A stretch of DNA of 64,000 nt from assembly GCA_964106645.2 (NCBI GenBank), contig OZ067039.1. The stretch is one strand, 5' to 3'. The stretch is from Podarcis pityusensis (Eukaryota). Under the pieces are notes generated by a model, which did not search any database, was not told the DNA's origin, and saw only the letters and a program-made list of their open reading frames with translations. Positions 40,270 through 63,785 of this stretch are shown piece after piece. Position 1 is the first letter of the stretch, and each line of letters begins with the position of its first letter. A program made the position numbers and the translations under genes.

Positions 40270-43200
40270 GGGACAGGGAAGAAGTGCAGCCTTCAGATAT
40301 CATCTCCTTCTTGCGCAGGATAGGCCAGTTTTCCTCCAGGATAGACAACAACTATCCAGCCCCCTTCCCTCTCATAACAACTATTTACTGTGTGGCCAGA
40401 TGCAAAAGGGTGTTGGCCATTTGGAGAGGCAACTTAAAGCTTTTTACACTTCTAACAGGCGACCAGTCTATTTTAAACTAACATGCTGTGTTTTCTGAAG
40501 GGATAGGGAAGGTAAAAGAATGCTGGGACAATTAGTAGCGTAAAGGAGGTGGTGTTGATATTAAGAAGCGTGAGAACAACGGGAAGCAGTTATACGGTGG
40601 GAGAGCTGCCACTCACTGCAAGGCAGTGCCAGGTAAGAAACAGATTGATCTGGGAGAACTGGCCTTGAATCTTTCAGAGGGGGGTGTATGAGTGGAAATG
40701 TTGAGCTGATATGCTATTTCTACTACTCATTAATCTTCTGTGTATTTAAGTGTTCTAGACGTTAGCAACAGTAGTGCTGCTGGATTAAACATTTACAGGA
40801 TAGGATAATTATAGAATTAAAGTACTACCACTACATGACCTAGGGGCCATAGACTCCAGACTCTGGTTACCTTGTGTGTGCCATTGCGCTCTGTCCCCAA
40901 TGCCTTCACCAGCACTTTTTCTGGTGCTTTGCCCAGCTCTCTCAGGTCCCACAAATTGACATTTCGGTCCCGAGAACCTGAGACACAGAGCTTCCCACCC
41001 TGGATACAATGAAAAACAACTGATTACTGTAAAAGCTGAGCCACTGTCCCTCCTTCTTAAGATTCTTCAACAAACAATATACAGGGTAGTGATATACCGG
41101 CACATTGCAAAGTCATACAAAAATGTATCACCAAAGCAACTATTCCAGAATAAGGAGTGTGAACAAGCAAACAAATAAATCACTGAAGAAGTCTTTTTCT
41201 TTCAGTCAATCGTGTATTAGTAGAAGCAACATCAACTCGTAAATCGACTTAAAGACGCTGTTCCGGTACAACTAGCGTTTCTTCCCATAAGGGGCTTAAT
41301 CATCAAGCTGTATAATGTAGTCTAGACAATATACAATCAATAGTTTAGACAAATCTGTCCCTCTGTGCATTTATTCCATAGGAAGAACAGAAAGAGGCTA
41401 TGTAGCCTTCTATTTGCTGGCCCTCCTTCTTGAGAGGCAGGCACTAAAAAAACAAAAAAACCACCACCTCTGCATGAAGGATATGCACAAGGACTTCCAC
41501 ACCAGGGTTTCTCCCTTCACCCCACACATCCACTGAAATTGGCTCAGGGTTGGCAGGGCAGGAGAACCCCCAGAACAGTGCATGGAGGGAGGAGACCAGG
41601 ATAATTCTTCCTACCTTCCATTCATGGAAGCCTCGGATGGATCACATACCTTCCCTATGTGGAAGAACACAACTGGACACAACCCACTAACTGTATAATT
41701 TTCAAATTGAACACTGTAATCATAAATGTTAACTTAAAAAAAAAAGTAGTTAAGGTGCATGCCATTGCTGGTATTCCACTCAGCATACCGAACCATGAAT
41801 CCTCCCAGCTAAAATATTCTGGGTTGTAACCAACAAAATTATTGCATGCGCAGTGGAACAACTTCTCTCTCCTTCTCCTCTAGCTCTGGGGGTCTCCCAA
41901 CCCTCCAAAGCAGATTTAGGGGGGTGCACTGGGGGAGGATGCAAAGTTTTGTTGAGTGAGCTGAAATTGTTCCACTCATGCCATGTCCACTGTCAGTCTT
42001 AGAGGTTTAAATCCAGAGTCAGCCCTCTCTTCTAAGGAATGGAATGCAATGTGTAAGAAATGGAACTTCTGCTGACAATTTAGATGAATGAATTTTGTAA
42101 GACTGATTTCTCAGATGAGTAATCACAGAGAGGTTATGACAAAATAATATTTCAGAACACACTCTTAACTTCATGACTGCTTGTTCACAGACTCTATCAA
42201 TCCTTAATATTGTACAAATAAAAGCGACACAGGAAATGTGACTTTTACCTGGAGCAGCAGCACAGAGTCAACTGATGCAAAGTGTCCCTCAGCAAGGGAA
42301 AAGTGCTCTGTGTTCCTGCCATTTTCTGCCCATTGTTGGAGGTGCTCCTCTAGTTCAATGCAGGCAGCTGGCCAGTTAAAGGCATCATCTGCTGAGACAT
42401 GAAAAAGGCATAAAGAGATGCTATTCTTCCTTTGGGCTTTGCAGAACAAACTCAGGCAAGGTAAGCAAATGTATATACAGTGGTACCTCAGGTTACAGAC
42501 GCTTCAGGTTACAGACACTTCAGGTTACAGACTCCGTTAACCCAGAAATAGTACCTCGGGTTAAGAACTTTGCTTCAGGATAAGAATAGAAATTGTGCTG
42601 TGGTGGTGCGGCGGCAGCAGGAGGCCCCATTAGCTAAAGTGGTGCTTCAGGTTAAGAACAGTTTCAGGTTAAGAACGGACCTCCAGAACAAATTAAGTTC
42701 TTAACCCAAGGTACCACTGCACTGTATCTTATTTACAACATTATCCATTGCTTTTCCATACAAGTGTCCTCAAAAAGAGAAAACAGTAGTTATATAACCA
42801 TAAAAGTGGGTTTTCATCAATTCGGAAAACTTTGGAGACTGAAAGGACATTATCTTTAAATGCAGAGCCAGCACTCAGCACTATCAGTTTGGTGTCAACA
42901 TTACACCCAATTCTGGGCTCAACTGTAACTCTCTAAAAATTAAAGGCAGGTTTTCAATTTGAAACAAAAGAGGCATGGAATCTAAAGAGCAAGAATGGGC
43001 AGGAAGACACTTAGCCACAAATGTTTATAGAATAATGTTTAAAAACCTGCAGGAATACAGTGGTCCCTCGGGTTAAGAACTTAATTTGTTCTGGAGGTCC
43101 GTTCTTAACCTGAAACTGTTCTTAACCTGAGACACCACTTTAGGTAATGGGGCCTCCCGCCGCCACCGTGCGATTTCTGTTCTCATCCTGAAGTAAAGTT

Positions 43201-44107
43201 CTTAATCCAAGGTACTATTTCTGGGTTAGCGGAGTCTTTAACCGGAAGCGTCTGTAACCCGAAGTACCACTGTACTAACTTCCATCCATTTCAGCCTCCC
43301 TATCAGAAATAACAATGATTTGAGCTGCCAGTTGCCCTGGAACAGCAGAGTGGAAGGGCAGCATATTCTGGGTTCTGCCATTGGAAACAGCCAGTGAGAC
43401 CAACAGACCCCACCCACTGCCCAAAGAAGGAGCAGCTGCAAGGAGTTTACTCCCTGGCAGAAAAAAAACCCCATAAGAACTTTGGCATCTAAGAACACAT
43501 GAGTTCGCTTTATTCCTCCTCCATGCCCAATCCCATTTCTTTTTGTGCTGTGTCTTTTAGAATGCAGGTCTGAGAACAGTGATTATCTTATTATTGACAA
43601 AGCTGATCTGGAAAGGTTAGTTCATACTTGAGTTAACAAGATAATAAAACATGGTAGGCAGAAAGGGAACCCACCTTCCACTACTGGATAGCTGCTGCTG
43701 ATCCTCTTCAGCAGACGAATTCTCCAAGTGACTTCATCCTGCAGAATGTCCCTCAGTGTCTTGCAGACCAAAGGAAGGACACCCAGGACAAATCTGGGCT
43801 TCAGGTAGGAACAGATCTCCAAGATCAGCTCCAGAGGAAGAGATAACAGCCCTGAAGCTGTATCATCACTAACAGGAGACTTTTTCAGTTCCAGAGGAGG
43901 AGACCTGTGATCTGATACTTGGGCCTTATCACTTACTGAGAGAGATGTGGGAGGAAGGCACTGGGATGCCTGACTAGACTGGCTTGAAGATCCAAGAACA
44001 CGTTCAATGTATTCCTGGGCCTGGGTATCTGGATCCGCTTTGCTCTCTGTGTCAGAATCATTATCAGAGTCTTGGTGTTCAGTAGCAGAATCAGGAGGAG
44101 CATCCAT
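34722..44107 (-). CDS. FBXW9: F-box/WD repeat-containing protein 9, 466 aa, 10 coding exons
   Basis: Exons 44107-43675, 42388-42249, 40999-40871, 39593-39481, 38174-38083, 37508-37360, 36382-36269, 35691-35602, 35079-35014 and 34796-34722 (1401 nt). F-box [17 protein letters not shown]; WD motifs [37 protein letters not shown]; ends VEVWKLSV*. Confidence 0.96.
35785..36009 (+). mobile_element. 5'-truncated Sauria-type SINE
   Basis: It is the 3' half of the same SINE as 15157-15506, ending ggtccctttacc. Exact 11-bp TSD TTAGGCACTAG (35774-35784, 36010-36020). Confidence 0.85.
38839..39428 (+). mobile_element. CR1 LINE 3' end (ORF2 C-terminal fragment plus tail)
   Basis: ORF 39002-39349 [37 protein letters not shown]... 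is a typical CR1 ORF2 C-terminus. It has an (ATTCTATG)n tail and an in-frame stop upstream. Confidence 0.92.
40095..40268 (+). repeat. LINE tail fragment ending in a (TAT)n microsatellite
   Basis: gttagccatcctgagccc...gggtggggtataaataaa followed by about 10 TAT units (40238-40268). Confidence 0.55.
42478..42719. mobile_element. Tc1/mariner-like MITE
   Basis: TIRs CAGTGGTACCTC / AAGGTACCACTG, with TA on the left side. Confidence 0.85.
43058..43272. mobile_element. Tc1/mariner-like MITE, inverted relative to 42478-42719
   Basis: TIRs CAGTGGTCCCTCG / CGAAGTACCACTG, TA TSD; the body is the reverse complement of the neighbouring copy. Confidence 0.85.
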
Positions 44108-44212: not shown

Positions 44213-45095
44213 CACAGGTATGAAATTTATGGCATGTAATGCCTTAAGAGAAAACATAATGAAAATGATTTATAGGTGGTACATGACACCAGTCAAGCTT
44301 GCAAAAATTTACCATTTGCCCGACAATAAATGTTGGAAATGTAATGAGACTGAAGGCACATTTTTTCACCTTTGGTGGACATGCCCAAGGATTAAGACAT
44401 TCTGGGAGATGATTTATAATGAAATGAAAAAGGTATTTAAATATACCTTCCTGAAGAAACCAGAGGCCTTTCTCCTGGGCATGGTCAGCCAATTGGTGTT
44501 AAAGAAGGATAGAACTTTTTTTATGTATGCAACAACAGCAGCAAGAATACTCATCGCGAAGTACTGGAAGACACAAGATTTGCCCACCCGGGAAGAATGG
44601 CAGATGAAGTTGATGGACTACATGGAACTGGCGGAAATGACTGGCAGAATCCGAGACCAGGGAGAAGAGTCGGTGGAAGAAGATTAGAAAAAGTTTAAAG
44701 ACTATCTACAGAAATAATGTAAAATTAATGAATGTTGGAAAAATGTTGAAATGAAGTTATATGGCTTTAGTAGAAATATTATAAGGAATTAAGTACAGAT
44801 AGGTTAATAGAGCATTAAAGGAAAAAATAAGATTAGAATGAGTTAAGATAATTATAGGATAGAAAACAAGGAAGATGGAAAGGAATTGCTGAAATAATTA
44901 ACAGAAGTGGAATACAAAAAGGGAGGTGTGAGGAGGTCGTGGAAATAAGTGAATGAAAGATGGGATAATGAAATTGTTTGATTTATTTTATTGTCTTTGT
45001 CTTGTTTTGTTAATTTGATGTGTTGTGTTGTATTGTTTTTTTTTCTTTTTAGTGTTTAAGTTTTTGGAAAAATAATATTATTATTTTTTTAAAAA
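44213..45095 (+). mobile_element. 5'-truncated L1/Tx1-clade LINE inserted in a mariner-like MITE (44169-45323)
   Basis: ORF 44220-44687 has an ORF2 C-terminal zinc-knuckle (CWKC...HLWWTC), then an AT-rich 3'UTR and A-tail. The 21-bp TSD AGAAACTGTTCCAGAAGTCCA lies at 44192-44212 and 45096-45116. Confidence 0.88.
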
Positions 45096-47150: not shown

Positions 47151-47279
47151 TCATAGATCTGTAGAGTTGGAAGGGACCACAAGGGTAAGAGTCCAACCCT
47201 CTGCAATGCAGGAATCTTGCCCAACGTGGAACTTGAACCCACAACCCTGAGATTAAGAGTCTTAAGCTATACTGAGCCA
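47151..47279 (-). mobile_element. tRNA-Lys-derived SINE with a CR1-type tail
   Basis: The minus strand tggctcagt...gactcttaatctcagggttgtgggttcaagttccacgttgggc resembles tRNA-Lys(CTT) and is followed by ggtcccttccaactctac...ctatga (CR1 3' end). Confidence 0.75.
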
Positions 47280-51412: not shown

Positions 51413-51998
51413 CTGAGAAAAAAAGACAGTCGGTATTAAATAAAAGTAACCAGCAGAGCGCATTAGAGCCTGACTCCCCCTTTCACAGCATGTTGCTCAT
51501 GCTATCTACTAGTATGTCTGCAGGATACACAGCCACAACTAACTTGGGCAGACTGATTGCTGTACTGGCAAATTCGGGTCAAAGCCGGAGTAGGGTGGAC
51601 TTTGACCTCTTCCGCTACATTAATTCATAAGCAAATATTAATACGGAAGGCCAGAACCTCAAATATCAGGATAAGAGGAATTGTGGCTGGGGAATGTGGG
51701 CTTTCCTGCACTGCCATCTCCTGACACATCCCACAAGGGTAGTAGATTGCTTCCTATATGGGATATTTGATCTCCACATTCACATTCTCAAGAGCCTCTG
51801 CTCAGTATCACTGAAGCACAGATTCTGCATCACTGAGAGGACAACTGACTACAAGCTGGCCTACATCTTTCCATCTCAATTAGCTCCAACATTCAATTCA
51901 TTCTTCCTACTTTGGTCACTCCATTCCCTTCTTAGGGCTTTTCTCCCTCTCCCATCTCACCGAATATGGGACTTACCGAGTACGGTTTCACTGTTTGC

Positions 51999-62209
<10,211 letters not shown>

Positions 62210-62281: not shown

Positions 62282-62378
62282 TGAGCCCAGAATCCTTCAG
62301 AACTGAAAAACACTCAACATGTAGCTTCAGGATTCGAATGTCTTGTATTTTCATTGGTCATCACTGTTTCTGGGCTCA
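62282..62378 (-). ncRNA. Intronic box C/D snoRNA hosted by TNPO2; predicted guide for 18S rRNA 2'-O-methylation
   Basis: Minus strand: tgagcccagaa-aca-GTGATGA(C, 62364-62358)-ccaatgaaaatacaAGACATTCGAATc-CTGA(D', 62330-62327)-agctac-ATGTTGA(C')-gtgtttttcagtt-CTGA(D, 62300-62297)-agga-ttctgggctca. It has a perfect 11-bp terminal inverted repeat, lies on the host strand, and its D box is about 87 nt upstream of the 3' splice site. Confidence 0.85.
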
Positions 62379-63516: not shown

Positions 63517-63785
63517 CAGTGGTGCCCCGCAAGACGAATGCCTCACAAGACGAAAAACTCGCTAGACGAAAGAGTTTTCCGTTTTTTGAGTCGTTCCGCA
63601 AGACGAATTTCCCTATGGGCTTGCTTCGCAAGACGAAACGTCTTGCGAGTTTGTTTCCTTTTTCTTAAAGCTGCTAAGCCGTTAATAGCCGCTAAGCCGC
63701 TAATAGCCGTGCTTCGCAAGACGAAAAAACCGCAAGATGAAGAGATTCGCGGAACGGATTAATTTCGTCTTGCGAGGCACCACTG
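63517..63785. mobile_element. Tc1/mariner-like MITE (same family as 29636-29955)
   Basis: TIRs CAGTGGTGCCCCGCAAGAC / GTCTTGCGAGGCACCACTG, TA TSD. Confidence 0.85.

Follow-up and report, generated by a model that had tools for sequence, protein, structure and literature searches.

Which RNA is encoded in an intron of the Podarcis pityusensis TNPO2 gene between positions 62282 and 62378, and which rRNA nucleotide would that RNA modify? The window referred to throughout is the whole 64,000-nucleotide stretch of DNA that we analysed.

A single-guide box C/D snoRNA gene in a TNPO2 intron

The minus strand of the window was confirmed to hold an intronic box C/D snoRNA gene with a single guide, spanning 62282..62378 when its external closing stem is included, as delimited by its boxes and an inverted repeat. 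All elements of the C/D'/C'/D architecture proposed in the earlier note could be located on that strand. The two arms of the terminal stem, at 62368..62378 (5' arm) and 62282..62292 (3' arm), form a perfect inverted repeat of 11 bp. Box C (GTGATGA, 62358..62364) sits near the 5' end, with a TGATGA core that is identical in all seven aligned family members, and box D (CTGA, 62297..62300) sits near the 3' end. Between them lie the internal boxes D' (CTGA, 62327..62330; CCGA in two homologues) and C' (ATGTTGA, 62314..62320; of GTGGA type in the homologues). The 12-nt antisense element AGACATTCGAAT at 62332..62343 precedes box D' with one spacer base, a C, between them. Because the segment before box D (62301..62313) is unconserved between homologues, a second, D-box guide was considered and rejected, and we read the snoRNA as a single-guide RNA, with an expected mature length of ~75 nt from roughly 62369 to 62293. 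The same element was the top-ranked candidate when the whole window was scanned for box C/D genes, and a region of 103 nt around it folds with z = -2.8.

The host assignment rests on the exons downstream, which were searched singly, one by one. An 87-nt exon on the minus strand (62123..62209, with acceptor AG at 62211-62210 and donor GT at 62122) encodes the peptide EYIQKLMPP...LLE just downstream of the acceptor, which bears out the proposed TNPO2-intronic position. It is the first of ten 3' coding exons that run to the stop codon within 52002..62209 on the same strand, with the upstream part of the gene lying beyond the window end. Of the two human paralogues, TNPO1 and TNPO2, we take these peptides to represent the latter; SNORD41, the known TNPO2 guest, is present at the orthologous loci. 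The snoRNA lies in sense orientation in its intron, with 87 intron nucleotides between box D and the acceptor AG, in line with the ~70-90 nt typical of such guides and with the canonical spacing that had been claimed; the corresponding distance is 91 nt in one relative (L036) and 380 nt in another (L050).

Several other features were seen in the window. The same intron contains an element of ~270 nt at 63517-63785 with terminal inverted repeats and TA at both flanks, resembling a Tc1/mariner-type MITE. Exons of an F-box protein lie on the minus strand at 42204-44107; we presume this to be FBXW9, which in mammals is located next to TNPO2. A fragment resembling LINE ORF2 occupies 44220-44687 and a tRNA-like SINE remnant 47226-47279, and a weak SNORD38 match at 51771-51838, downstream of the TNPO2 stop codon (21 bits vs 44, E 5), is probably due to chance.

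Data from close relatives bear on expression and constraint. A search for RNA runs of the species itself found none. Contigs from two presumed long-RNA runs of a close relative reach over the 5' portion of the gene and the intron upstream of it at a depth of 2-3; they are identical to the window within the gene and differ from it at several positions immediately beyond. These low-depth contigs are intron fragments with partial cover and do not reveal a mature RNA. In reads from close relatives, organism E had 0 changes in the gene vs 16 in 1236 nt, where about one would be expected in the gene, too little divergence for a statement on constraint.

Relatives in vertebrate tnpo2 genes, losses and a mismatched copy

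Relatives were sought by using one TNPO2 exon as a protein query and scanning the genomic contigs so retrieved. This revealed that tnpo2 harbours intronic homologues in four teleosts, including a cyprinid, and at two bird-like loci. In the cyprinid, Cirrhinus mrigala (L035), the snoRNA lies in the intron after the GAEMQ exon; in three loci that appear to belong to other teleosts (L043, L044 and L048) it lies in the intron after the DFIFF exon; and in GC-rich loci presumed to be avian (L036-39 and L050) it occupies the intron that also holds the window copy. Since three different tnpo2 introns are thus used by the cyprinid, the other teleosts and the sauropsids, the family must have moved within its host gene. 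Within the seven-copy alignment an 11-nt guide core is identical and held in the same register, with G at D'+5, in six copies including that of the window, while the spacers diverge and columns are on average 62% identical; when the intron of the window is compared with that of the bird loci, nothing but the snoRNA can be aligned. A model (R1) trained on six copies detected L050, the one copy outside the training set, at E 8e-10, and found no second family copy in the window. A search of metagenome contigs with the pattern box C, guide and D' returned 34 matches, none with the family's D box and stem, and we rejected these as family members, reading them as chance matches in microbial DNA.

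The family is not universal among the loci examined. Two placental loci (L046 and L047; mammalian and taken as non-human, as their SNORD41A copies differ from the printed human sequence) retain SNORD41A and SNORD41B and show no trace of the window snoRNA in the introns covered, which in L046 include all three introns occupied elsewhere and in both loci end short of the introns further upstream. The family is also absent from tnpo2 of one cyprinid locus (L042) and from three fish loci (L040, L041 and L049) that have no SNORD41 in the stretch covered; L040 and L041 probably represent a tnpo2 paralogue. In the presumably poultry-type locus L050 (940-1016), a host contig that comes from a metagenome group, all four boxes are intact and A replaces G at D'+5, a mismatch to chicken C346 seen in one contig only, so that this copy is possibly a decaying or retargeted guide. 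Taken together, the mismatch in L050 and the absence from L042 suggest that the family is dispensable and that a copy may be retained after its canonical target no longer fits. The comparison of orthologous TNPO2 introns proposed in the earlier note yielded conservation or loss: either the guide core is unchanged, or there is a mismatch or no gene at all, and the compensatory change expected from its idea of guide and target co-varying was not found. Most likely, the family was present in tnpo2 of the teleost-amniote ancestor and was lost or disabled in several lineages.

The predicted 18S target and the zebrafish Cm346 record

The guide forms a perfect 12-bp duplex with chicken 18S rRNA nucleotides 343-354 (human numbering), in which G at 62335, the D'+5 position, lies opposite C346. 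An antisense element of 10-21 nt directly before D or D', with its target at +5, is the arrangement expected of a C/D guide, and register and a published 18S alignment (PMC4907446) agree with the D'+5 target proposed for this RNA. That alignment places at position 350 a U in chicken and a C in mouse, human and rat, which is the difference that the earlier note gave for human and chicken. The alignment was machine-read, with one spurious extra letter in this block in four rows, and its numbering was cross-checked on Am99, Um116 and Um121. We left the crocodile row, which has U at 346, out of the target comparison, as it looks like a decayed copy with many C-to-T and G-to-A changes. The duplex has an energy of -16.3 kcal/mol with the chicken segment vs -11.9 with the mammalian C350 form, which introduces a central mismatch, and a perfect 12-mer to ~7.2 kb of rRNA and snRNA at either guide slot has a probability of about 0.0009. 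In the same alignment 18S G347-Y350 is complementary to G114-C117, which places C346 beside Um116 and Um121. We take the region holding these three nucleotides to be helix 7.

U350 is a pseudouridine in all non-mammals tested, a whiptail lizard included (PMC6984369), and it is therefore likely that the guide also matches the 18S rRNA of Podarcis pityusensis. The non-mammalian target segment was absent from the genome and viral contigs that we scanned, and a full-text literature search with the guide or target sequence returned unrelated matches only. By the established rules of C/D snoRNPs, the spliced TNPO2 intron would be debranched and exonucleolytic trimming would release a snoRNA of ~75 nt, whose boxes C/D and C'/D' would bind the core proteins 15.5K, NOP56/58 and fibrillarin; the 12-nt element before D' would then pair with pre-18S nucleotides 343-354, and fibrillarin would 2'-O-methylate C346.

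The predicted site has a record in one species. In zebrafish SSU-C346 is methylated, fractionally in embryos and increasingly during development, and the authors of that study attributed the modification to a guide that they called SNORD200 (Ramachandran et al. 2020, PMC7668251). Neither Rfam nor BLAST gave them a relative of SNORD200, and nearly all of their measured sites follow C/D guide rules (PMC7668251). Theirs was the sole paper naming the site in our literature search for 18S Cm346, and the modification is so far measured only in zebrafish. Cm346 is absent from the human site list, as had been supposed, and from Xenopus laevis, for which the RiboMethSeq supplement lists neither a site from Um252 to Um393, these two excepted, nor a guide that would match (PMC8797249); a chicken snoRNA survey and the SNOntology supplements likewise held no guide of this kind. 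The presence of Cm346 in zebrafish and its absence from the human and X. laevis lists support the suggestion of a lineage-variable modification. The claim of novelty is lower than was proposed, because the site was already measured in zebrafish with an assigned guide, a circumstance that the earlier note itself had named as removing the novelty. New are the member from an amniote, the identity of the host gene, the alignment of the family and the pattern of loss; the site and the chemistry are not.

We consider it probable that the window RNA is the squamate orthologue of zebrafish SNORD200 and guides Cm346. The window RNA, like SNORD200, is an intron-encoded C/D guide with the same predicted target nucleotide, SSU C346, and without an Rfam family. 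The case for orthology builds on this shared target and on the homologue in tnpo2 of another cyprinid. The two differ in that SNORD200 is described only in zebrafish and the window RNA comes from an amniote, in which it occupies a tnpo2 intron other than that of the fish copies.

A real, expressed snoRNA might instead pair with 18S 343-354 and bring about little or no methylation of C346, serving as a folding chaperone or persisting as a residual guide, on a stretch that SNORA35 and SNORD90, which guide pseudo-U350 and Um354 respectively, contact as well. Such a role would fit the fractional C346 methylation of zebrafish embryos, the lack of Cm346 in X. laevis and the four boxes kept by the poultry-type L050 despite its +5 mismatch. 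The window copy, however, has a perfect duplex, a consensus D' box and the same +5 register as the fish copies, and the adherence of nearly all measured zebrafish sites to guide rules also speaks for methylation, so that we regard this reading as improbable. Somewhat less credible still is a guide for Cm346 that belongs to a family separate from SNORD200 and reached the same target independently. The zebrafish authors' BLAST search without SNORD200 relatives would agree with separate origins, but a cyprinid tnpo2 carries the window family with the same guide, and the low identity outside boxes and guide leaves the copies too diverged for ordinary BLAST, which would explain that earlier blank.

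Known TNPO2 guests and other guides, and what the family means

Orthology to SNORD200 thus remains the reading we prefer, and it has to be set against the known snoRNAs of the same host. In humans these are SNORD41 and its paralogue SNORD41B/ZL2, each of which uses a D-box guide to address 28S U4276. We presume that ZL2/SNORD41B is the snoRNA also called SNORD135. SNORD41 and SNORD41B (RF00588) resemble the window RNA in being box C/D RNAs housed in TNPO2 introns across vertebrates, but they use a D-box guide for 28S U4276 rather than a D' guide for 18S C346, lie in different introns and share no Rfam similarity with it, and in every vertebrate listed the SNORD41 family looks different from the window RNA.

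We tried the window RNA as SNORD41/SNORD41B and rejected it: there was no RF00588 match even at E 10, and the window lacks the D-box guide of SNORD41, in keeping with the earlier remark that the guide is unlike that of SNORD41. The nine TNPO2 introns that the window covers (52002-62209) contain no SNORD41 copy, and this includes the one occupied by SNORD41B at both placental loci; in the bird and fish loci SNORD41 is found further upstream, in introns beyond the end of the window. A diverged copy of SNORD41 or SNORD41B (SNORD135) shares the host, and a duplication of the neighbouring SNORD41 in the deep past followed by guide replacement is conceivable; as a present-day family assignment, however, it is refuted by guide position and sequence, and as the two families occur together at the fish and bird loci, in separate introns, we judge it very improbable. 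The possible SNORD135 link was rejected accordingly, the SNORD41/41B guide being absent and the family different. The Rfam search that had been proposed gave no match at the window locus, SNORD41 included, either at the gathering threshold or at E 10 (Rfam 15), and the best Rfam match of any homologue was to SNORD59 (22.9 bits, the threshold being 45; E 4). That intronic sequence took on this arrangement by chance, conceivable in that the boxes are short motifs, has a negligible probability, as none of 200 Markov-resampled 64-kb strands held a perfect C box, CTGA and a Watson-Crick stem of at least 8 bp, and it is refuted by conservation from fish to bird and by the guide core, invariant in six of seven copies.

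Other guides touch the same ground without being the window RNA. SNORD90 (18S Um354) and SNORA35 (18S pseudo-U350, in non-mammals) act on the same 18S stretch, and SNORA35 activity at 350 was likewise lost in mammals with the U-to-C change; both have other target nucleotides, SNORA35 is an H/ACA RNA, and the window RNA matches neither in Rfam. A precedent for guide loss is pug18S-1279, retained in fish and a lizard and lost in mammals alongside an 18S U-to-C change (Deryusheva et al. 2020, PMC6984369), though this is an H/ACA pseudouridylation guide in Rpl35 and there, unlike for the window RNA, the changed base is the target itself.

A further C/D family was observed in tnpo2 introns of the teleost loci L043 (about 8985, 9578 and 12052), L044 (about 7257, 9010 and 12110) and L048 (about 943 and 2003), in several copies, in which CCCAGCTCA precedes a D' box of sequence TTGA. 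One of the copies is found beyond the final coding exon; the family is absent from the window and has only weak sub-threshold Rfam matches (SNORD103/85). We assume that CCCAGCTCA is antisense to the LSU stretch that contains yeast Cm2948 (snR69), a site that is not known from human.

A broader reading would join these observations: that an undescribed vertebrate family without an Rfam entry, possibly distinct from SNORD200, identifies 18S 343-354 as an ancestral hot spot served by three guides (Cm346, pseudo-U350 and Um354), that the mammalian U350-to-C change disabled two guides at once, that independent losses occurred in Xenopus and poultry, and that the developmentally regulated Cm346 of zebrafish also operates in reptiles. 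As a whole we hold this to be rather unlikely and offer it tentatively. With the window RNA as an orthologue of SNORD200, a methylation known from zebrafish and not from human would become an ancestral bony-vertebrate trait that was patchily lost, and a SNORD200-type guide formerly without relatives would gain a defined host gene and a searchable model. The family, which is unannotated and a candidate for Rfam, would work by ordinary C/D guide chemistry, and it would provide a clean test case for how an rRNA modification is lost, whether the target changes, the guide mutates at +5 or the gene is deleted.
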